From Wallemia ichthyophaga EXF-994 (lineage: Eukaryota > Fungi > Basidiomycota), in NCBI RefSeq assembly GCF_000400465.1, contig NW_008806276.1, positions 1 to 32,000 on the forward strand: a stretch of DNA of 32,000 nt, written 5' to 3'. Positions 1 to 12,827 of the stretch are shown here, piece after piece. Made by a program: the position numbers and the translations under genes. Each line of letters starts with the position of its first letter. Position 1 is the stretch's first letter. Under the pieces are notes generated by a model, which worked only from the letters and a program-made list of their open reading frames with translations, ran no database searches and was not told the origin of the DNA.

Positions 1-12
1 TGTTCACCTAAC

Positions 13-1513
13 CTAACCTTCTTTTTCACCGATTGCCAGACTAATATAAGCATCAATATGTCCATAAATCTTTCCGTTGTTTCTGTCTACAAATTGTTTG
101 TCAACAAAATCTGAGCTTGCTCCCGTATCTACAAGTCCTCTTGTTTCTTCTCCATTTATTCTAACTGGTGTTGTGATCATCTTGTCCTCCGGAGTGTCTA
201 CGTCTACTCCGGTCAGGGTTTCTCTAATTGTTCCTGTTCTCCTCATATGAGGGCATTGACGACGAAAATGTCCTGTTCTTCCACAACCGTAACATTGTAC
301 GTTACTCATTCTGTTGGCCTTCGTTGCGTTGAGGTCCATTGGGATCACCTCGTCTTGCTTTCTGTTAGGTGACGAGACCACGCCTTAAGCATTACCCCTT
401 TACTTACAGATTACTTCCCACATTTCCCAATTCAGCCTCAGACCGCCGCCCTGCCGGCTTAGCCTCCGATACTTCACACGGCACACATATAAAAGCCTCA
501 CTACTTTTCTATTGTATCTTAACGAATTACATTCACTTCTATCTATCTGTTTAGCTGTGTACAAAGCCATTCCTCATAACCTAAGCTAAGACAAGCCCAA
601 ACCTTAACACTTTCGATGTTGCGGTGGTGGTGGTGGCACAAAATAACCGAAATTTCTTTGTCCCTGGTTTCTCTGTAAACCTTGATTGCTTCGTATGAAT
701 GTTTCCTCGAAGTCAGTTGCATAACGATAGGCTTCTTCGAGTGTTTTGGGGTATTTTCCTAGTACACTGTCTTCTGTCTTTGGTTTGAGTGCTCTTGCAA
801 AGTTGTAAATTTCTAAATTCTCAGGCATAAGTGTGTCATGTGGTAGGATTGTACGTAGTTTTATATGCTTCTGGATGAGTTCATATACCGAATGTGTTTG
901 CTTTAAGTTCATGTATTGTCTAATCAAACTACGTTCCTCTGCAGGGTTGCTAAAAGTCTTCAACAAGATTTCCTTGAAGTCATTCCATGGTGGTAAATCT
1001 TCTCCGTTCGTTTTTTTGGTATTGCAGGTACCAAAGTTGGGCATGTTCTGTTAATAGACTAGTTGCAAATTCACTTTTTTCTTCTTCAGTGGCTCTAACG
1101 CTTTTGAAATAAGTGTTTAATTGATTAAGCCATGCTACTGTCTTTATTGAGTCTAATTCTCCTTCAAATGGTTGTGGCTTAATTGGTTCAATTTTTAGGG
1201 TGGTTTCGTTCTTTAACTTGATTCGGTCTCTTTCTTCTTGTCTAGCTTTCTCAATTGCTTGGTCTCTTTCTTTTTCTGCCCATAATGCCGAATATCTGGC
1301 CTCGAAGCTGTTTCTTTCGTTTGCTTGGTCTCTTACTTTTTCTTCCCATAATGCTTGGAAAGCTCTTTCTCTTTCTTCTTGTTCGATTTTACTGGTAACT
1401 CTCTCGTTTTCTACCGCTTGCTTGATAGCATCATTGATTTGTTCGTGAAGTGTAGTGATTTTACTCAAATCCATTCCTGCTACTTGTTCTGCTATCTCTT
1501 GATGTTCTGACAT
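13..1513 (-). pseudogene. gag-protease ORF of the retrotransposon, broken by three lesions
   Basis: ATG at 1513. One extra A in the A7 run (T7 at 1011-1017) shifts ...LWYLQYQK out of frame with TNGEDLPPWNDFKEILL. A solo LTR (363-609) interrupts PPQHRK|QDEVIPMDL. TAG at 13-15 follows the protease core. Removing one A, the solo LTR and one TSD copy gives a single gag-CCHC-protease frame. Confidence 0.88.
363..609 (+). mobile_element. Solo LTR (247 bp) of a second LTR family, nested in gag
   Basis: Begins TGTTAG, ends TTAACA. Flanked by identical CTTTC at 358-362 and 610-614 (5-bp TSD). TATAAAA at 488-494 suggests + orientation. No visible similarity to the host LTR at 1596-1864. Confidence 0.92.
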
Positions 1514-1578
1514 TTCTCTTCAGTTCTTTTTTACCTGACTGGCTAATACTTGCTCTCAAAATACTTGCTTTTATTTAA

Positions 1579-1593
1579 CTGGCGAAGCTACCA
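1579..1593 (-). other. Primer-binding site, complementary to a tRNA 3' end (probably initiator tRNA-Met)
   Basis: Minus strand TGGTAGCTTCGCCAG starts 2 nt inside the LTR end. Its complement CTGG-CGAAGCT-A-CCA reads as T-stem, acceptor strand, discriminator and CCA, implying an A1:U72 pair, the eukaryotic initiator hallmark. Confidence 0.8.
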
Positions 1594-1595
1594 AC

Positions 1596-1864
1596 TGTAA
1601 ACGTCTTGATCTTTGTGAGGTGAAACTGCACACAAAGAGCAAGGCGCTGAGATTAATAAAAGAATTAAGTCTAAGATGTATCAAAAGAAAAAGTAGTCGT
1701 TTAAATAGTTTAGAATTCTAGGTTTTATTCCCATTGTCTCGTTATCTTCATTGTCCTCGTGCATAATCATGCATAATCTTCATTGTTCTTTATTCTCATT
1801 GTTCTCATAGCGACCATGATGTCATGTTACCTGTTCCTGCATCTTGCCCGCTGTATTACCTACA
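1596..1864 (-). repeat. 5' LTR of the Ty3/gypsy element (about 269 bp)
   Basis: TGTA at 1596 and TACA at 1861-1864 form the terminal inverted repeat. The inner end is fixed by the adjacent PBS. TATA-like TATTTAAA on the minus strand at 1707-1700. The outer end is less certain because the partner LTR is outside the window. Confidence 0.75.
1730..1806 (-). promoter_or_regulatory. Cluster of four CATTGT(T/C) HMG-box-type sites in LTR U3
   Basis: CATTGTC at 1732 and 1749, CATTGTT at 1781 and 1797. 1795-1806 CTCATTGTTCTC matches the yeast Rox1 HMG consensus YYYATTGTTCTC exactly. The cluster lies just upstream of the TATA-like box in the element's sense. Confidence 0.45.
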
Positions 1865-1886
1865 AAGGCAGGGGCACATCCTTATA

Positions 1887-1973
1887 GCTCCCGTGGTCCA
1901 GTGGTTAAGATGTCGCTCTTATATGAAATCTATCGTATAGCGAAGGTCGGGAGTTCGAACCTCTCCGGGAGCA
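1887..1973 (+). tRNA. tRNA-Ile(UAU): tRNA-Ile(UAU) with 14-nt intron (1924-1937)
   Basis: Acceptor stem GCTCCCG/CGGGAGC plus A73. A-box region TGGTCCAGTGG. Anticodon stem TCGCT/AGCGA with TAT at 1920-1922 and the intron at the canonical 37/38 position. T-arm GGGAG-TTCGAAC-CTCTC. Length 87 = 73 + 14. Confidence 0.95.
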
Positions 1974-1975
1974 AC

Positions 1976-1980
1976 TTTTT
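1976..1980 (+). terminator. RNA polymerase III terminator (T5)
   Basis: TTTTT 2 nt after the tRNA discriminator base. Confidence 0.8.
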
Positions 1981-3569
1981 GTTATTATTTTGAATGTTTC
2001 ATTTCAAATGCCTTATATAATCGGAAAGGGCGCCTGAAATGAGAGATTTTTAAACCCGAGATATACTGCTAGACAATTTTGCGTCGCTGAGCTCATTTGT
2101 CAAAGTAATTGTAAGTTTCGATAGGTTGCTGTTCCTGAAAGGGTGCTATGATAGAATTAAAAACTACAAAATGGGGAATTAGGGGAATCTCAAAATGACG
2201 TAGCAGATTTATCGATCTCTGTTCATCTTTTGTCAATTGCAATTTACAGCAAACTATGCTTCGTCTTCAGAGTGAGTATTGGGATACCTTACTTTGTTTT
2301 TTAGTGGCTTCTCTCTCGTGCGACAAGACTCAGCTAGTTTAGACACCTTCGGAGACCTTTGGGTTACCGCTGAATTATGTTAACTTTGCTGACAAACCGT
2401 CAATTGTCCTCGAATTCAGTGAAAAAGGCCCTTGACTTATATTTATGTAATATAGTAAGGCTCATTTCAAGCCATATCTCCCCCGGGATTGATTCTCATC
2501 CATAGGCACGTTCAACCGGATCTTGCTTCCAGACGACTTGCAATTCACCGATTTGAATGCTTGTGCTGTTCTGAAATATATTCCTTTGTATACAAGACGC
2601 CTTCTATAATTAATTAATTCGCGTATCACTGACTCGTGCACTGTGACCACCACCTAGTATCATAGAGCGGCTGACCAATGCCACAGACGAACGAAAAAAG
2701 AGCGATTGTATTGGGATTTGGTGTATGAATCTTAAAGATATCTTGGCTCTTGGCACTCACCACTTCATAATAACCTTCGAGGTTACAGAAGCTGCTCAAC
2801 ACCAAGACGCTTGAAATCAATATCGAAAATTACGCACTTGGATAATACAGGAGATACAGTGTGTATATACGTGCTTAGTTACAAAGTCACAAAATTGGTC
2901 GTGTTAAGAAACAAACTGAAGCGCGGGATAAATACAGTACCTACCCACTCCCGTTTCAATGATCCAATGGACTTAGTTCCAAAATTCCCTGCGACTGCCA
3001 TTCTTACGAGGAAAAGATATCCAAAGCGGATGACAGACAGTCATAAGGAAATAGCAACAATCCATCATCACGATTCTATAATTAGGAAAATAAGTAGGAA
3101 CAAAGGCAAATTATTTACTCAAGTCCCACAACTTCCAATCACACACTGTATCGCGGACTCAATCAAAATCCAGTTGCAGTATCAAAAGCAGAGGCAACAC
3201 GACGAACACCAGGATTCATACGCGCGCTAAACAGTCAAAAGTCTGAACACCACCGTGATCATCATCCTATTCTTCCTAAATCGTCACGTTCAGCGTACAG
3301 GTAGGCCATCCAGAAGCTTCATTACCGATGAGCACAAGCGTAAAACAGAGCTAACGTGGGCATTCGTTTTGCAGCTGATGCCAAGAATTTTATTTTTGGA
3401 GCTTCAACTCCTCTGATAGCCAGTCTTAACAGCCGTGGCAGCCGTAGAAAATCAACGCCTGCAATAATAACTGAATCTGTTTAAAATGATTGTAAGGGAT
3501 TTTTATTTCAGCCAAAAATTACAGTATAAATGCGTGATATTAACATTTAAAGAAAAAAGAAATTTATGA

Positions 3570-4170
3570 TTACTTCTCGAGGCTGAACTGAGAAGTAGGA
3601 CCGCCTGGCAAGGCCTTTAGAACAAAGGTTGGGGCATCAGATCTGAGAATGGAAAGTTCAAGAATCTCAATGATGCCTTTCCGTTCTGACAATCTATCTT
3701 GATCAAATTCGGCCAGGAGTGAAGCATATTTGCTAACATCTTTCCTGTCAGCTATTACGAGCACGTCTGGCTTCTTTCATGTTGCTTTCTCTCAAAAAGG
3801 TTGGAAGTGATTTTGTACAGGTTCCCTGACAGAGTCAAATATGTTTTGGGGAAATAAACATACCAGAAGTAGAACGTATGACGCATACTTCGGTCAGCAG
3901 CTTAGGGCATTTTGAGGCACTTCTTGTGAATGAAAAAAGGCGCTTCTCTGCAGTTTGCGGTTTGTCTCCCTAGTTTCCTTCATCTAGAGCAGTCCAAGAG
4001 CTGAGATACGTTTATCTTCGAGCTTACCTTTCTCTAAAACTACGTTGATGATTCGCGCTACTTAATCTCCAAATTCCTCTCTAACCAAACTGTCGACCAG
4101 AGATCTTTTGATACGAGCGCAAATGGTCTCATCGCAAACTTGGTATTCTTCACTGGTGCTAGCTTTTTGC
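3570..4170 (-). pseudogene. RPC82: Pseudogene of RNA polymerase III subunit RPC82/RPC3 (POLR3C), C-terminal part; may extend to about 5.0 kb
   Basis: Minus-strand translation EYQVCDETICARIKRSLVDSLVREEFGD*VARIINVVLEKGKLEDKRISALGLL*...QEVP(fs)ADRSMRHTFYFWYVYFPKTYLTLSGNLYK...(fs)VLVIADRKDVS...ILELSILRSDAPTFVLK follows, in order, the RPC82 motifs I recall (GKL.EK.I, QEVP..ADR.PSRTFYLWYV, NLYK). Stops at 4062-4064 and 3984-3986; frameshifts near 3910 and 3765. Confidence 0.8.
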
Positions 4171-5899
4171 AAAGATCTGTTCGAAGCTCCGGGCGGTCCA
4201 GGGAAGTCTTGCGATGACTTTATTGGTGAAACAGGTACCGATTATACATCGGTCTGTCAAGTGCTCGTCAACTCTCTTAACCAGCATCTTCGCGATATGT
4301 CTTGCCAGGAGAATATCGTGACTGCCCACATTCTGAGGTCAGCGTCCTATTACTAAAAGAGGATCGATACAATTCTAGCTAATTCTGAGGTCAATGAGGT
4401 AAGTGCTTGGTGGTACTGTTGGTGGAGATATCGATGATGTTAGCATTGCCCTGAACGAGGCACAAAGTCAGAAAATGCCTCAAGGTAAGTTAGAGGCTAT
4501 CAAGACTGTTTAGACAAAGATTATGCATGTTACCGCGCTTTTCGAACGACACGATGGTTCTTTACTTGAGGCAATGCGTCATGGCTATCTGCTCTTGATG
4601 GTTGAGATATCGTTTTAGATTAAGGTGAAGCGATTGAAACCTTTTCTGTAGCCATTCCGCTCGTTAATTTTAGCTGATAGGGGTGGTAAGTATGTTTAGC
4701 AGCTGCAAGTCACAGCCTCAGATAGATTCCAAGTCATCGTTACCATTAACCCAGGTGGTGATTTCGATAACAAGGAGTTGTCGCTGCTCTTCTTAAACGT
4801 TAAATGCTAAGAGACTTGAATTGATAAAAGTGTTTGATAGACTTGGATAGACTTGGCAAGGACGCTAATGGTGTCTTTGGTGGTTGCGGTGATAACTGCG
4901 GGTCATTTCGGTGAGCACATCCTTGTCTCCGGCTACATCTACGCGACCGACAGACACTCTGATCGTGCGAACGTACTTGCCTCTAATGACTTTAATTCCA
5001 TCCTCATTTCAGTACACAGGTTGTGTATGTGTTTTTTTTTTAAAAAAAAAAAGAGTGTTTAGTGCAGAGAATATATTCTCTATTTGAACAGATGTATATT
5101 GCGCCATAGATGACAAATGTTATCTCTAACTCATTCGGACTGCTATAGGGTGCTGAAGGTCTCAAGAAACTTAAGAATCTATGGCTAAATGATTATGGTG
5201 AAATATATTGCTGAATAGTGTGAATTTACGTGCCGTTATCCTCGACATGGTTAAGGCCTACGCTGTCTTGCCCAAGGTGTCTCATTAGCATTTGAGACGC
5301 GCTGGGTGCCTTGAAAGACTTTTAAACATACGAAACAACGAGTAAACATAGCACATAGCACAAAACAAATCGTTGCAGATACACTAAACCTCTACACCTT
5401 ATACATATCGGTTAAATAAAGCATATTTCTCGCATGAACCCTTCTAGACAAGTGTTTTAATCGGAGACAGTGGAGACAAAAGTGGGGTTTATATCCTCGA
5501 ACCCAACTTGAACCCAAACTAATCAAATAATATTTAGTTTTTGCTGTAACGCTTGAAATAAGGATGTAGCTAGCTTCTTCAAATTCGTCACATGATTCAT
5601 AACCACCATCTCTCACAAATGACACAATTCGATATGTCCAACCTGCCAAGTGGTAATAACAAATAGGATGCCGAATTTAAATGGTTGGGGCACTATCATC
5701 GTCAAGATACAATCATCCAGTGTTTGTAAAACGTTCGCGCAATATTTAAATGATAGATGTTCATTTTTCTCAACTTATCCCCAAACGTTTTACCTATATA
5801 TTTGTTCCCTTAGCTTTTTACAATCGAATGATAAAGCTGAGCACTTGAAAACAAAGGGACTGGGCTTGACTTGAAGAAATCACCTAAACCTAACCTGAG

Positions 5900-6360
5900 A
5901 CAAGTTGAAACACCTCAATATTGATTACGTTACATTTACCAACATGTCTAATCGAACAATCTTTAAAGCCCTCAAGAAACTTACCTACTATTTGATTTTT
6001 GTTGAAGATGTAACTATCGCAAGCTACCTTCCCAGCATTGAGTATTCGGATTTGAAAGCCTCAAGTCAAACAACTGGATCGATACCTTTTGGAGAAATTC
6101 ATTTAACCTCAAAGCTCTGAAACTATACAAGTTTGGAGTAAATTTACTGACACAGAGACAGTGGAATCCCTGCAAGGGTTGGAGATTGAAGCTCCTGGCA
6201 TGCCTGTCGCGAAAATCGGAAGTTTACCAAGCTTCTTGAGGAAAATGACTTTATTCAGGATCCTCGAAACTATACAGTGCTTTTTTAAACCCTAAAAAGC
6301 TTTCAAAGTCGAATCATTTGAAATACCTCAATCTTAAAACGTATCAATCGGATTCGTGAA
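5900..6360 (+). pseudogene. Degraded leucine-rich-repeat-like coding remnant
   Basis: Periodic LxxLxL-type motifs across shifting frames: LKHLNI, LKKLTY, LKALKL, LQGLEI, LRKMTL, LKYLNL. No intact ORF. Confidence 0.35.
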
Positions 6361-6424
6361 GGGATTTACGACGCGAATATTCCACCACCCTTGGAGTAAT
6401 TTAGAGCGAAAACAATGTTTTATT

Positions 6425-6735
6425 CCAGATACGCATTTCAGCGCTTCAAATCTGCACACCTCTTTGTAAAATTAAATTAGCGTCACATCCAACATTTCTC
6501 AAAGGTTGTTCATTATATCACAGCCATACCTTTTGAAGTATTGTAGACTAAATTGTTGAACGTTAACATTTTTCTCCTTTATTAATCGGACGATTGAAAG
6601 TCATTGAACTTGAAAGAAAAAGCGATGTCGTTAAGAAAGATGCTGCACCGATTTAAGCAAGAACGCAATGAATCGCACTAAACGTCATCGTAAGTGAATT
6701 TTGTCATAGAGAAAATACAGGGCATTGCCACACGA
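6425..6735 (+). repeat. Dispersed duplicated block, copy A (partner at about 19885-20150)
   Basis: Core 6640-6678 matches 20061-20099 at 36/39 nt. Collinear shorter matches flank it (AGATACG, GTCACAT, ATCACAGC, ATTGTAG.CTA). Boundaries approximate. Confidence 0.75.
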
Positions 6736-7692
6736 CGAAGTGTTTTCGCTACCGATTCAACCTTATCAATTCACTTTAGTGCATTACGCGTGGCGCGGAT
6801 GATCTTATCTCACAAAAAATCTTCATATGTAGAAGACACGTAATGACCAGAGCCAAATTAAGAAGGAAAATAACCAATATCAACATTATACTCGAATAAG
6901 AACTAATGCTCGGAAGCGCACCAGCTCTATTAACCCGCGTACCCAAAATAACTCGGTGTTTTAGCGTAACCGTGAAAATTCGAGGATCGGAAATCACCAG
7001 AAAATTGCGAAAAGAGCCTCACAGTAGAATTACTATCTCCTTCAATCGTCATAGTATCGATGGATGCACGTTGATCATGTATCGTCTTGACAAAATATTC
7101 AGACTTCATCGTGGATCGACCACCCGCAGGGTGAAAGAAGTGCGCTCTTATTTATCTCCCCGTGACTCTCGACCTCAAATTACAGACTCTTGTCAAAGTT
7201 TCGATTGGATTAGTGATGTCATGTTGTGGAGATATTTGGCCAGCGATGCTAGGAATGAGAGTGACACCAACAGGTCAATGCTATAGAGCTCAGTTCTGAT
7301 TATCTTCAAAAGAAATGTCATCCTCAAAAGAAATGAGATTTTTTGTACGAGGCAAGTGCTGTCCATAAGACGTGAAATGTGCTTGAATTGTTGAATTACT
7401 CTTACATTCCGATCATGGCGAAATTTAACCTCAAAACCCATTGTTACACACACTCTTAACCGAACGCACCGTGTCATGTTTGTGGTTGTGCGTTGGACTG
7501 TTTAGATTATCAAAAAGCAAATCAGTAAGCACTTACACGATCTCATTCTTCGCGTGTGAGTAATGAAATAAAAAGGAATTTTATTCAATCATGGATGCAA
7601 CTATTATGCGAAATATTCATGCCTAAGAGATTAAAATTCAAAGAATAAACTGTGTCTTTGAAATACAACTTGAATTAAATGTGTGATTCAAT

Positions 7693-8424
7693 TCAACACG
7701 TCAGACGGTCTACAAGATGCCGAGTTGCTTGTTGAATGACATTCTTGTTATTCTCGTAGCCAGTGTGTCCCATCTCGTCCTCATCGCATGCCTCGTTACA
7801 TATACAGTCACCCTGTTGTCATTGAGTGAGACTAAACGACTGAGAAATTTCAACTTACTCCTAGGCAGAAATCAAGAACCTTGCCGCTGTCATCGAAATT
7901 TTCAGGAATACTTTTTTCGTTAGCAGCCCCAATGCCTTTAGCATCATCACTCCCAAATCCCCCTGCGTTTGAATCCTGGTTTGGCTTTCTGTATGGATTT
8001 CCAACTAATATAACGGCTTTAATGGCATCTCTAGCTTCCGCCGACAGATTGTTACTGTTGAGGGTGTCTAGGGTGGCAGTAGCTCCTTGCGAATATCCTA
8101 AAAGCACGTAAACCTGATGTGGGCATCGCTCGAGACCGTCGTCAATGGTGGTGATGATGTCTTTAACGGCTAGTGTGGTGTTTTGGTCATCTCCTGCGGG
8201 GTATACTGTGTCGTATTCGAAGCCGTTTGGTACTTTTGCGAGTGTATTGTTGACGACATCGATGAAAGACCTCGATGGACCTTTTAGGCTGTTAGAAGAG
8301 TAACGGAGATCCAATAGTACATGCCTTGCTCCTCGCCTGTGCCTCGAGTGGAAATGAGTACGTAGTCGTTGCAGAAGGCAGTGGCAGCAGTAATGAAAGC
8401 AAAAATAACAGCTGAGAAGATCAT
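7693..8424 (-). CDS. Secreted cutinase/acetylxylan-esterase-like CE5 serine esterase, about 213 aa, 3 exons (8424-8325, 8280-7859, 7812-7693)
   Basis: Signal peptide MIFSAVIFAFITAATA; CNDYVLISTRGTGE; nucleophile motif GYSQG; AVILVGNP; D-x-x-C and His in the last exon. Exon phases close correctly (100+422+120 nt). Intron 1 is GC-AG (44 nt), intron 2 is GT-AG (46 nt). Confidence 0.9.
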
Positions 8425-8726
8425 TGTTGATGATGAGGACTGGAATGCTGATTAGGTTGCTTTATAAATCGTGTAGAGGAACGGAATTTGAGGATCACGT
8501 GTTATTGGATGGCGTATGAGCGTTCTGCTCTAATGAATGCAGCGTCTATGCTCAGCTGGTTTAGTGATAATGAGATGGTTCAGGTGAAAGATCACTGGAC
8601 TTCTCTGATGACATTTCAGGAGGCTTAATTTTCTTTGAGTTTCGACAGGTAAACTCCTTACTGATATTTCTCATTTTTGTGATAAAGTTTGTGTAATTAG
8701 TGACAACAGAAGTGTTTTGAATTATT

Positions 8727-9433
8727 TCAAGACAATGCAAAAAATTTATTATCAAGACAAGTACTTTGTAAGTGCAGAGCCGCCTTGTGCTGCAAGTCAT
8801 TGTCAGAGCCATACCTCAGATGCACAGTGCTCTCATCTTTGGATGCGGTGGGGTCGTTGCAGACGTAGTCATCCGGGTAGCAGTAGTCCTGAGCTATTCC
8901 ACTCTCATCGAAAACTTCAGGGATCGGCTTTCTAGAAAGCGTGCTGGCCTCCCCGACTACATTATCTAAGCCCATTCCGTGAACGTTAGAGTCTTGCGTC
9001 GCTGGGTGGTATGGGTTGCCAACTAGAATGACGGCTTCAATCACATTTTTGGGGGAGTTATTGAGTTTCTCGCTGTTGAGGGTTCAGGACAGCTGTAGCT
9101 TCCTGAGAGAAGCCCAAAATTGCGTATACTTGTGCTGGAAATAACTTTAAACCCTCATTTATATTGTCGATAATGTCGTGAACAGCCAGAGTGGTGTTTT
9201 GGTTTATTTCAGCTGGTTAAAGCAAGTCATAATTAACACCATTAGGAAATTTGTCGAGCGTCTCGCTTATTATGCCAGTAAAACTCATGGATGGTCTTTT
9301 TATAGGTGTAAGCGATTAAACGAACGCCCTGCATTGATACCTGGATCCTCACCAGTACCTCTGAACGATTATAGGGCAAGCCCTGGGTTACAAAAGCCAA
9401 TAAAAAACTATTGCCCCATCAAAAATTTTTCAT
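8727..9433 (-). pseudogene. Tandem cutinase-like paralogue, pseudogene
   Basis: RGTGEDP|GPSMSF...NGVNYDLL*PAEINQNTTLAVHDII...QVYAILGFSQE..(fs)..VIEAVILVGNPY...DYCYPDDYVCN...H is collinear with the intact gene. Lesions: broken signal exon, a base missing at the intron-1 acceptor, in-frame TAA, GxSQG changed to GFSQE, frameshift near 9085. Confidence 0.85.
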
Positions 9434-10332
9434 GATTGCTTGGAACGTCAGATCTCCATGACATTACAATACCATTCCTTGAGATGCTAGGATTCATTCC
9501 AGCGACCGTTTTATAGGGCATTGCCAGCCCAGCTGCTTCGTAATGTCTTTTAAAAACTCAAGCACAAAAAAAGCTCCAAGATCTGTGTGCTGCATAAGTA
9601 ATGGTTTAATACTTATCCAAAGTACCCACTACTCTGCTCTTTTTAAGGCCACGATAAAGAAGTAAAAGTTTGGAATGGAGCGATTTTGTTTGGTTGAAAA
9701 TTTCCAAGTTTCACCATAATCGTTTCACGTGATTCGTATGTTGTTTGATTCACCAAACAGATTTTCTAGGCACGGTTGACGAGCAGCACATGACGAAAGT
9801 GAGTTATCTATGAGTAAATTGATGTGGATGGACAAAATCAGACGTCAAATTTGAGCGCAGCAAGTTGAACAAAAAATTCTAAGCGTTTCAACCGTTCGCC
9901 GGTCATTCCTTGTGTAATCATCTGATAAGGAACGACGGCACGGGCTGTCTCTGCCACGTACATTGCTTGGTCTCAATTGGTTAAAGTAATTACCATCTAT
10001 TGTCAAGACAAGGGAATTGTATTGATATACTTAGAACAATCCAGACGATTACCTAAAGAGCAAGGTAACTGATGCTGAGATTGAGACTCTTACAAAACAA
10101 GCTCAAGCAGTGGGGTGTTGCTATTGCGGAGCCCAAACAGTTTACGAATCTCTTGGAGAGTGTTTAATTAACCTAGGTAATTGACTCAGTCCAATCATTT
10201 GAATGGATTACCATAATCGTCTGAATGAATTACCACATTGTCATCCATTTTGACGTGGGAAGCAGTTGCGTAATTAAATCGAGTGGATAAGAAGACACAA
10301 TCTTCTTTTTTACACTCAACACACTCACATTC

Positions 10333-11284
10333 ATGGCATCTAACGATCAAGCATCTAACAACAACTCTGAGTTTAGACTCGACAACCTCTTCTCCACCAA
10401 AGGCAAGCTCGCGTTAGTGTCTGGCGGTGGCAGCGGCATAGGACTAATGATTTCACAAGCGTTGGCCGTCAATGGTGCGCACGTGTACATCTTCTCGAGG
10501 TCAGAGAAAGTGAGACTGGTCGCGGAGACGTACAACAAGGGCGATATTAGTGGAAAGATAACTGCCTTGCAAGGGGACGTCACGAGCAAGGAAAGCATCA
10601 AGAGTCTCGTCGAGGAGTATTCGAAGCACGAGGATAGACTCGACATTCTAGTGAACAATAGTGGAATCGCCGGTTCTAAGGTGAATTTCAGTACAAACTC
10701 GGTCGAAGAATTAAGCAACAACCTTTTCAACAGTGACACATTCGAGAACTGGGAGGAAGTAATGCGTACCAACGTTAGTTCTGCGTATTTCGTGTCTGCT
10801 GCGTTTTTGCCACTGCTTAACAAGTCCAGTGAGACACAGAAAGGATGGTCAGCTACCATTCTAAACGTTACGTCTATCTCTGGCTCCGTCAAGATAACAC
10901 AACATCATCCGGCTTACAACTGCAGCAAGGCGGCAGCAAACTACCTCACAAAATCACTTGCAAACGAGCTCAATCTTAATGGCTTCAAGATCAGAGTTAA
11001 CGCTGTAGCGCCAGGGGTTTTTGGCTCTGAAATGACTGCAGGTGGATCGTCCGCCAATCAGAAATCGAAAATCGAAAACGACAAGTACAAGAGCCTCCCA
11101 AGTGGCCGCGTTGGAGATGATAAAGATATGGCACAAGCAGCTCTCTTTTTGATCCTCGACCAGTACGTCAACGCCCAAAGCATAATCGTCGATGGAGGTG
11201 AGTGTGGCGGCATTAATGACGTCATATGTTAGCTGAAAAGTACTCATTCCCCTTACAGGATACCAAGTCAATCATGGCCAATAA
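10333..11284 (+). CDS. Classical short-chain dehydrogenase/reductase (SDR), 2 exons (10333-11197, 11259-11284)
   Basis: SGGGSGIG Rossmann motif, LVNNSG, catalytic S...YNCSK, IRVNAVAPG, IIVDGG. Intron GTGAGT...TTACAG (61 nt) gives a C-terminus GGYQVNHGQ*. Confidence 0.93.
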
Positions 11285-12348
11285 TTTTGGGTGAGATGGT
11301 TTTTGCTGTTGAATGATATAATGAATGATGTAATTAATGACGTTGGCGCAGCTGGATTATTGTCTGTGATTCGGCCATTGGCCCAGAGTACCAGAGTGAA
11401 ACATTTCACCTTGGTGCTAAGTCATTTTATGAGGGACAAGTCAATGACCATAGCTTGATTAGAAAGTCAATCCAAGGAATGAATTGGGAAAAATTGTCAG
11501 TAAATATGTCACAATGAGTATTTCAATCAGTAAAAATGAACGACATTTTTAAGTATATTAAATGGATTCATGTGGCAACTCATACAGCACGTGTTTGCAT
11601 ATCTCACCAGATGACATCACCTACTATAGAGCTCTACATCCTCACTTTTCGTTGATTAAGCTGTGACTCTGAAGATGTTTTATGTTCTCCGCTGAGTGCG
11701 ATTGCGATATTCATCTCTCGTCTCGACTCACGAAGCGCATTCGTCATCAAAGATTCCGCGATCAACGATCAGCGATCAGCGAAGAACGGTGATGAGTCTG
11801 CGATGAATTGAGATTCATAACTCTGATAAAGCTGCTAAGCCGACTAGTTGACTAACCGACTAGCCTTCTTGGTTAATGCTGCCTTCTTCGTTCCTCTCTC
11901 CGTCACCATCACTGCCACCAAGAGGGATAGTCACATTAAACTTATTCAACTTATTAAACTTCGATTTCGTCTTATTACTCGCTTAGTTGTGCTGGATCGT
12001 TAAAAATGTCCATCAAGCAAAGGAGTGTGATAATGTTCAATCGATTGTACACTATATTTAAGTATCTACACTGCCTTCTTCAAAAAGGCCAGATAGGTCA
12101 TTCTATTCGCTTGCCACTGATTAATCGATTAACTTGACGGAGATAGTATCCGTATTCATTAAAACCGAGGAAGTGTCACTTTGAGGGCTTGGCGCGAAGG
12201 GTTCATATTCGTCTTCCTGATGAAATTGAGAGTCTGTTAGTTGCAAGGGGGCTAGCATGACTACGGTCAATAGATTCCTGCACATTATCTTTTTGCTCAA
12301 TCAAGAGAGAAGAGGCCGTTGCACTAAGTTTACGCGAACTATCCGGAC

Positions 12349-12827
12349 CTACATGGGAATTTCAGGCTTATATGTTGGGCTGCCGAATGTAGAGTGCATC
12401 TGGCCATACGTCTTTGGCATTGTGATGAACGGCATTTTCAGTGGCTGCATCAACAAAGAAGCATTCGCCAGGATGATCATAATTCGGTTTTGATCTTCGA
12501 AGCGCTTTCGAGCGCTTCTCGTTTTCATCGGGGAATTACCCTTTATTTTGCTAGAGGAAGCACGTATATCTGTTTCAGAATCTTCAGAACTCCATAAAGT
12601 CTCGCTAATTGAGTTGCTTCTTTTAGGGGTACCAACAGCGAGATCAGGGAAACCCTTTAAAAATTGCCGTAGTTGTGTCTTCGATGCCTATAGATAACGC
12701 ATGATTAGCTGGCTGCTATTTACAAAAGCTGCAAAGAGACGCTTACACGCGCGCTTTGTCTCGTTCTAGAGGTCTTGTCCTTCTTGCGAGCATCATTTGA
12801 TGCAGGGAAAACGATTGCTTTTGGCAT
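12349..12827 (-). CDS. Hypothetical two-exon ORF (about 139 aa), basic and Ser-rich; may be the 5' part of a longer decayed gene
   Basis: ATG at 12827; exon 1 of 81 nt; intron 12746-12688 with GTAAGC donor, CTAAT branch and TAG acceptor; exon 2 open for 113 codons. No recognisable family. Confidence 0.35.

Follow-up and report, generated by a model that had tools for sequence, protein, structure and literature searches.

Integration beside tRNA genes is the textbook case of a retrotransposon safe harbour in compact genomes. In the basidiomycete Wallemia ichthyophaga EXF-994, an LTR of a Ty3/gypsy element lies against the 5' end of a tRNA-Ile gene near the start of scaffold KE007226.1, which raises the question of whether the tRNA gene directed the integration. 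The stretch of DNA that we analysed, hereafter the window, comprises 32,000 nucleotides (KE007226.1:1-32000), and window base 1 is scaffold base 1. The genome is 9.6 Mb in size, 73.6% coding, with 1.67% repeats, and its tRNA genes total 11.55 kb, that is, ~140 genes (PMC3849046). A preliminary description of the window proposed that this element may target tRNA genes in a compact fungal genome, and we examined the tRNA gene, the exact end of the LTR, the remaining anatomy of the element and its relatives at other loci.

The tRNA-Ile(UAU) gene occupies positions 1887-1973 on the plus strand, with a score of 52.5 bits against Rfam RF00005 (gathering score 29), and ARAGORN returned the same coordinates, bearing out the earlier placement of the mature 5' end at 1887. 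The anticodon loop, CUUAUA, presents the anticodon UAU (Ile), an intron of 14-15 nt follows position 37 (about 1924-1938), and the cloverleaf, the A box and the B box are all intact in the Rfam alignment (sequence TGGTCCAGTGG / GAGTTCGAACC). A T5 run at 1976-1980 on the plus strand, 2 nt past the 3' end of the gene, reads as the Pol III terminator. The cloverleaf, the anticodon, the intron 3' of position 37, the A/B boxes and the oligo-T terminator together are those of a eukaryotic tRNA-Ile(UAU) gene, and the orthologous locus in another strain (L003) carries an identical tRNA-Ile.

The preliminary description put the outer LTR end at 1864, giving an LTR of 269 bp separated from the tRNA by a 22-nt spacer, with AAGGC (1865-1869) as the target site duplication (TSD). 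However, LTR homology crosses 1864 without a gap and stops at 1886; the 22 nt of the supposed spacer, including AAGGC, are themselves LTR, and the U3 end adjoins base +1 of tRNA-Ile at a distance of 0 nt. The 5' LTR (TATAAGG...GTTTACA) thus measures 291 bp and spans 1596-1886 on the minus strand, as delimited by a seven-copy junction alignment, BLAST, the junction of polypurine tract (PPT) and LTR in L011, and the TSD in L010. The description had also named an LTR end other than 1864 as refuting its reading; the end is indeed elsewhere, but the shift tightens the association with the tRNA gene and does not break it.

Several lines of evidence converge on position 1886. When window 1886-1596 was used as a BLAST query, the match started at query base 1 in all copies that extend to the U3 end, namely L003, L010, L011 (two LTRs), L012, L013, L014 and L004. 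In the seven-copy junction alignment, the flanks are unrelated up to one column, and TATAA starts from that column. L004, from another strain, carries the LTR of a sister family, which aligns gap-free past 1864 and ends exactly at 1886, with 12/12 matches over TATAAGGATGTG, and beyond 1886 L004 and the window are unrelated (alignment score within shuffles). In Wallemia mellicola (L011), the internal LTR comes after the stop codon of the integrase and a polypurine tract, with AGGAGGGGGGAGTGA followed directly by TATAAGG, which is the expected PPT-U3 junction. A distant metagenome chromovirus shows AAAAGGGGGGAGGG followed by TGTAAGGAT at the equivalent PPT-U3 place (TGTAAGGAT is found there in L008, a distant relative of the Wallemia family); the JGI metagenome relatives L005, L008 and L009 are distant chromoviruses on wrap-around contigs and were used only for this comparison. 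The LTR-PBS junction and the U3 terminus were also sought as sequence patterns in the metagenome and GTDB collections, with 0 matches.

In all LTR copies the first two bases are TA, where TG would be canonical (window 1886, L010:9631, L011:8059 and 12090, L004:356), and the other end is the canonical ...ACA. A start at TGTG (1878, 8 nt from the tRNA) was considered and rejected: L010 reads AGTG there, and both the TSD and the PPT put the start at TATAA. The 3' LTR of the window element is not recoverable from the EXF-994 assembly because the scaffold itself begins at window base 1. Since L010 has a 5-bp TSD in a near-identical position, the TSD of the window element is predicted to be GCTCC at 1887-1891, that is, tRNA-Ile +1 to +5, with the second copy lying beyond the scaffold end.

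The interior of the element continues on the minus strand toward the scaffold start. A primer binding site (PBS; TGGTAGCTTCGCCAG) at 1579-1593, minus strand, is separated by a 2-nt spacer from the inner LTR end at 1596, and the same PBS is present in L010 and L011. This site is complementary to the 3' end of a tRNA with an A1:U72 pair, which suggests initiator tRNA-Met. In the sister family, and in L003 as the orthologous copy from a diverged strain, the TGG of the PBS is mutated to TGA, which fits long-dead copies. The gag gene (Ty3_capsid / Retrotrans_gag; 615-1513, minus strand) is split between the ORFs 980-1513 and 604-1044 by a frameshift near 1040, and a CCHC zinc knuckle with the spacing CX2CX4HX4C and the N-terminal part of a protease (LVDTGAS) are found in translation at 1-362, minus strand, with stop codons near 13. 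The Pfam domains of the element family are Ty3_capsid, Retrotrans_gag and zf-CCHC (PF00098); the gag homologs P0001-P0004 carry PF19259 and PF03732, and the Pfam scan also covered P0007. Reverse transcriptase (RT), RNase H and integrase (IN) are absent from the element portion in the window, which ends at the scaffold end. An exact look-up of the window gag ORF and of an ORF within the nested LTR described below gave no match, nor did word-index protein searches with the window protease fragment and the L004 RNase H fragment. The minus-strand LTR, PBS, gag, knuckle and protease agree with the earlier view of a Ty3/gypsy element transcribed away from the tRNA.

Ahead of the zinc knuckle, gag is interrupted by a nested solo LTR of another family (363-609, 247 bp, TGTTA...TAACA), flanked by the TSD CTTTC at 358-362 and 610-614. 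The corresponding empty site is seen in L006 (strain GCA_004917845.1), where two alignment blocks overlap by 5 nt. Contigs of other strains (L002 and L007) break inside the nested solo LTR, which is therefore multi-copy. With a frameshift in gag, this nested LTR and stop codons in the protease, the window copy is long dead. The insertion is also common to the strain of L003, with 98.8% identity over the shared locus, element and flank included; because L003 shares it despite 1.2% divergence, the window insertion is old, and as the orthologous locus in another strain, L003 represents no independent event. The annotated 'hypothetical protein' gene J056_002964 (window 604-1513) is the broken gag, the intron of the gene model skipping the frameshift near 1040, and its annotation is hereby corrected. 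The record of the J056_002964 locus matches window 1-11513 as its reverse complement with 100% identity.

The start of KE007226.1 is a gene-poor, AT-rich scaffold end that holds a nest of transposable elements (TEs). Beside tRNA-Ile, 5.7 kb (window 1974-7690) are without an annotated gene, despite the 74% coding genome, and the GC content is ~40% across window 1-22 kb vs ~52% across 22-32 kb, with a genome average of 45%. We also considered whether tRNA-Ile could be internal to a larger element, and rejected this on finding no Pol remnants in window 1974-7700.

A second insertion was recovered by a full HMMER search with gag, which was blind to tRNAs and brought up Wallemia relatives absent from the word-index results. 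The gag hit, E3P92_02100, lies in the interior of a contig of 199.6 kb (L010, SPOD01000019.1) from a different W. ichthyophaga strain, and its neighbours, Dynactin p62, an Oxidored-like gene and Nup88, are different from the cutinase and short-chain dehydrogenase genes that neighbour the window element. At this locus, a tRNA-Tyr(GUA) gene with a 21-nt intron occupies L010:9537-9629 on the minus strand (Rfam 54.7 bits), and a 5' LTR that is 88% identical to the window LTR starts at L010:9631, followed by the same PBS and gag. The U3 end lies 1 nt from tRNA-Tyr +1, in divergent orientation as in the window. The element is 2.3 kb long (9631-11909) and closes with a partial 3' LTR (R-U5; L010:11822-11909) that ends ...GACGTTTACA. 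A 5-bp TSD, GAGGA, stands directly before the 5' LTR (L010:9626-9630) and directly after the 3' LTR (L010:11910-11914), and therefore both LTR ends are fixed independently of the alignments. The duplication covers tRNA-Tyr positions -1 to +4, the intact tRNA being the copy beside U3, and thus the staggered cut was made across the first tRNA-coding base pairs. The insertion displaced the original tRNA-Tyr flank with its AATAAATATAA element at about -30; the L010 LTR has TATTTAATA at the same distance and might replace the upstream element, although this is only a suggestion.

The LTR and leader of the window element are 82-88% identical to those of the L010 element, against 67-75% for gag and protease, and to judge by these values the two are distinct subfamilies. 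As distinct subfamilies at unrelated tRNA genes, they represent two separate integrations and no single copy-and-paste event. At two independent loci, tRNA-Ile and tRNA-Tyr, U3 accordingly lies at 0 and 1 nt from +1, in both cases divergently, so that a fixed distance from Pol III genes is seen across the independent copies (n=2; the other copies are in rearranged contexts).

We compared this agreement with a chance model of ~140 tRNA genes in 9.6 Mb, counting U3 ends 0-1 nt from tRNA +1 in the observed orientation. The per-insertion chance of this geometry is ~1.5e-5, or 5.5e-5 if only non-coding DNA is available, and the chance of two such junctions among <=5 independent ones is ~2e-9, or ~3e-8 for non-coding DNA only. 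We therefore regard tRNA-directed integration as well supported and likely, resting on two clean junctions, with the TSD verified at one of them (L010). The central proposal of the preliminary description is thus sustained by a second, independent insertion with the same orientation and a TSD, in a 9.6-Mb basidiomycete genome, whereas the anatomy that it gave for the locus was wrong.

Among the alternatives, a preference of the integrase for a short DNA motif in place of Pol III (e.g. GGAG directly 5' of U3, equivalent to CTCC at tRNA +2 to +5) would draw on the NCTCC start that the two target tRNAs share (GCTCC in the window, CCTCC in L010) and on the PPT end in L011, which reads GGGAGTGA directly before U3. 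Yet a 4-nt motif is present tens of thousands of times in 9.6 Mb, and both insertions are nevertheless at tRNA +1; moreover, the register of the junction relative to GGAG shifts by 1 nt between the window and L010, and other junctions are without the motif (CAAAA at LTR1 of L011, ACATA at L004). We consider such a motif preference unlikely as the explanation of the two junctions.

We hold it to be equally unlikely that integration was random and that, in a 74% coding genome, the insertions that persisted were those in harmless spots, tRNA flanks among them. The genome is indeed very compact, with 1.67% repeats, every copy seen is old and defective, and copies lie in gene-poor or TE-nested settings, all of which would accord with survivorship. 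However, purifying selection cannot yield positional agreement to 1 nt together with the same orientation at two different tRNA genes, and the first bases of a tRNA gene are not obviously the most harmless intergenic spot. Finally, the notion that the tRNA-LTR junction is not an insertion junction, the tRNA being carried by the element or the junction reflecting a segmental duplication or an assembly artefact, might appeal to the position of the window copy at a scaffold end, to short-read assemblies that break in these LTRs and to the tandem and duplicated structures in W. mellicola, but it is largely refuted and scarcely credible, because tRNA-Ile-UAU and tRNA-Tyr-GUA differ in gene, intron and flanks, other LTR copies are without a tRNA, L010 lies within a 199.6-kb contig among ordinary genes with a clean 5-bp TSD, and the window junction is reproduced in L003, an independent assembly of another strain.

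With respect to tRNA genes, the further copies gave a divided picture: L010 is at tRNA-Tyr, whereas L004 and the W. mellicola cluster adjoin no intact tRNA. At the U3 end of L004, no tRNA was found within 355 bp, and the possibility of a degenerate tRNA hidden in this flank was rejected, the alignment score falling within shuffles and Rfam returning none. The same 2-kb contig carries a third type of LTR (TGTAAC...GTTACA, ~190 bp) twice, at L004:1-117 and 1668-1858, one upstream of the element and one inverted inside it, at the deletion from protease (PR) to RNase H.

In W. mellicola CBS 633.66 (L011), two LTR copies (8058-8357 and 12089-12388) are 100% identical and belong to a rearranged cluster in which two tandem elements share an LTR, an inverted truncated LTR lies inside gag and the flank is duplicated (D5/D6). 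One copy of the duplicated flank adjoins LTR1, and the other lies 24 nt upstream of a tRNA-like gene, which is itself 0.74 kb from the nearest LTR; the duplicated upstream flank beside LTR1 is 6.5 kb away. ARAGORN reports the tRNA-like gene at L011:14606-14704 (99 nt, with an intron) under the label Asn(att), whereas inspection by eye suggests Asp(GUC) and an intron of 25 nt. The gene folds as a cloverleaf, but a search of it with Rfam returned nothing at E<=1. The cluster is too rearranged for its original geometry to be derived, and L012-L014 seem to represent this same locus, carrying a deletion. L004 and the W. mellicola cluster are therefore neither clean counter-examples nor support, and the family also ends in TE nests.

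These copies also bear on the nature of the missing pol region. RT was found in none of the copies examined, nor was a complete IN, and RNase H is present only as a fragment, in L004, where the region from PR to RT is lost. L006 passes from the protease straight to the integrase C-terminus, and the position of the IN C-terminus downstream of PR in both L006 and L011 fits a PR-RT-RH-IN order in incomplete copies. The place of RT and RNase H in L011, between the protease and the integrase C-terminus, is occupied by a 407-aa ORF (L011:9884-11107) without a Pfam match; it overlaps gene WALSEDRAFT_60749 and appears to form part of the 628-aa proteins of other W. mellicola strains.

The integrase C-terminus of L011 (11403-12089) matches PF00385 (Chromo) with 27.8 bits (cutoff 25.1) and PF24626 (SH3_Tf2-1) with 30.8 bits, and, on visual inspection, the chromodomain keeps no more of the aromatic cage than its central Trp. 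A chromodomain or targeting domain at this terminus had been flagged earlier as worth seeking, and in this W. mellicola relative it takes the form of SH3_Tf2-1 plus Chromo; the window copy is without the integrase C-terminus. Since the L011 chromodomain scores above the Pfam threshold, the element family is a chromovirus. Its Ty3/gypsy character is expressed in direct LTRs (the L011 pair; a 5' and a partial 3' LTR in L010; the 5' LTR only in the window), a PBS (window) and a PPT (L011), a Ty3-type capsid, a CCHC knuckle and an aspartic protease, and a 5-bp TSD, within the 4-6 bp typical of such elements (GAGGA at L010; CTTTC around the nested LTR in the window). The feature in the window is likely the 5' part of a dead chromovirus-type Ty3/gypsy element that integrated onto the 5' end of a tRNA gene.

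We lean, with some reserve, towards the broader proposal that integration directed to Pol III genes arose independently in a basidiomycete chromovirus lineage and took on a new geometry, in which the intasome would sit on the first 4-5 bp of the tRNA gene in a fixed divergent orientation, the TSD would rebuild the tRNA and the TA-ended U3 would become the new upstream flank. In the mechanism that we envisage, an integrase with a C-terminal SH3-like domain and chromodomain would be anchored to part of the Pol III complex (TFIIIB, TFIIIC or Pol III), much as the Ty3 integrase is tethered to TFIIIB. The Pol III complex would then serve as a ruler with ~1-nt precision and impose one orientation. 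At L010 the staggered cut crossed the first tRNA base pairs and the duplication restored an intact tRNA gene beside U3, the LTR end becoming the new 5' flank of that gene. The tRNA 5' end could thereby offer a safe landing site in a 74% coding genome.

The comparison with known tRNA-targeting elements concerns mainly the landing point. Ty3 of Saccharomyces cerevisiae shares with the Wallemia element the Ty3-type capsid, the CCHC knuckle, a PBS complementary to an initiator-like tRNA, a 5-bp TSD and nucleotide-precise insertion at tRNA genes in a compact genome. However, Ty3 integrates 1-4 bp ahead of the Pol III start, which places it ~12-17 bp short of the mature tRNA 5' end, whereas the Wallemia cut spans -1/+1 to +4/+5. 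An insertion on the mature 5' end cannot lie upstream of the Pol III start, and therefore the geometry is not of the Ty3 type; the preliminary description, which had likened it to the upstream insertion of Ty3 and DGLT-A, does not hold on this point, as the insertion is on the first tRNA-coding bases. Furthermore, Ty3 is without a chromodomain and its LTRs are TG...CA, in contrast to the TA...CA of Wallemia, and an interaction with TFIIIB is shown for Ty3, whereas any such contact of the Wallemia element is hypothetical.

Tj1 of Schizosaccharomyces japonicus is likewise a Ty3/gypsy element with a 5-bp TSD, a fixed orientation and a short LTR (244 bp vs 291 bp). It lands at tRNA/5S genes, at -5 to -11 from the mature 5' end and upstream of the start, whereas the Wallemia element lands on the coding start; Tj1 is always in the same orientation as the tRNA, whereas both Wallemia insertions are divergent. 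Additionally, Tj1 self-primes and has an ascomycete host, in contrast to the tRNA-type PBS of the Wallemia element, and its targeting is shown by de novo integration, whereas the Wallemia evidence is genomic and comes from two sites. The elements of Y. lipolytica, inserted ~5 bp upstream of the Pol III start, are also unlike the Wallemia element.

In the amoebozoan Dictyostelium, DGLT-A and Skipper-2 are Ty3/gypsy elements at fixed distances from tRNA genes in a gene-dense genome. Skipper-2, a chromovirus whose chromodomain has diverged and which was re-targeted to tRNA genes, sits downstream of the tRNA gene, whereas DGLT-A lies 13-33 bp upstream and is without a chromodomain; neither is found on the first tRNA bases. 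The fungal chromoviruses (MAGGY and Tcn1-like) share the Ty3/gypsy backbone and the C-terminal integrase chromodomain, but MAGGY and Tcn1-like elements associate with heterochromatin or centromeres via H3K9me binding, and none is reported at tRNA genes in the literature searched. The Tcn1-like clade is described as widespread in basidiomycetes (PMC2864245). In the table of Pol III-targeting elements in a 2018 review, ascomycete yeasts and Dictyostelium are listed and no basidiomycete, and the Wallemia landing point differs from all the cases in that review. Our literature search on tRNA targeting in basidiomycetes found no report, and nothing relevant on Wallemia retrotransposons was found either.

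If the proposal is correct, the Wallemia elements would add one more independent origin to those of tRNA targeting, and the first to be listed from Basidiomycota, with a chromodomain integrase re-purposed away from heterochromatin. The basidiomycete case would add a different landing point, the opposite fixed orientation, a chromodomain integrase and TA...CA LTR ends to the known repertoire, and would offer a new system for asking what component of Pol III acts as the ruler. Moreover, it would demonstrate that an integrase of the retroviral type is able to cut inside a tRNA gene yet leave that gene intact, and would explain why short-read assemblies of Wallemia break beside some tRNA genes.

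The relationship between the subfamilies has a further aspect. The L010 element is 86-93% identical in DNA to W. mellicola L011:8059-13650, with 86% protein identity in gag/protease, and only 67-82% identical to the window element from its own species. This closeness points either to horizontal transfer among Wallemia species or to subfamilies that are old and co-exist.
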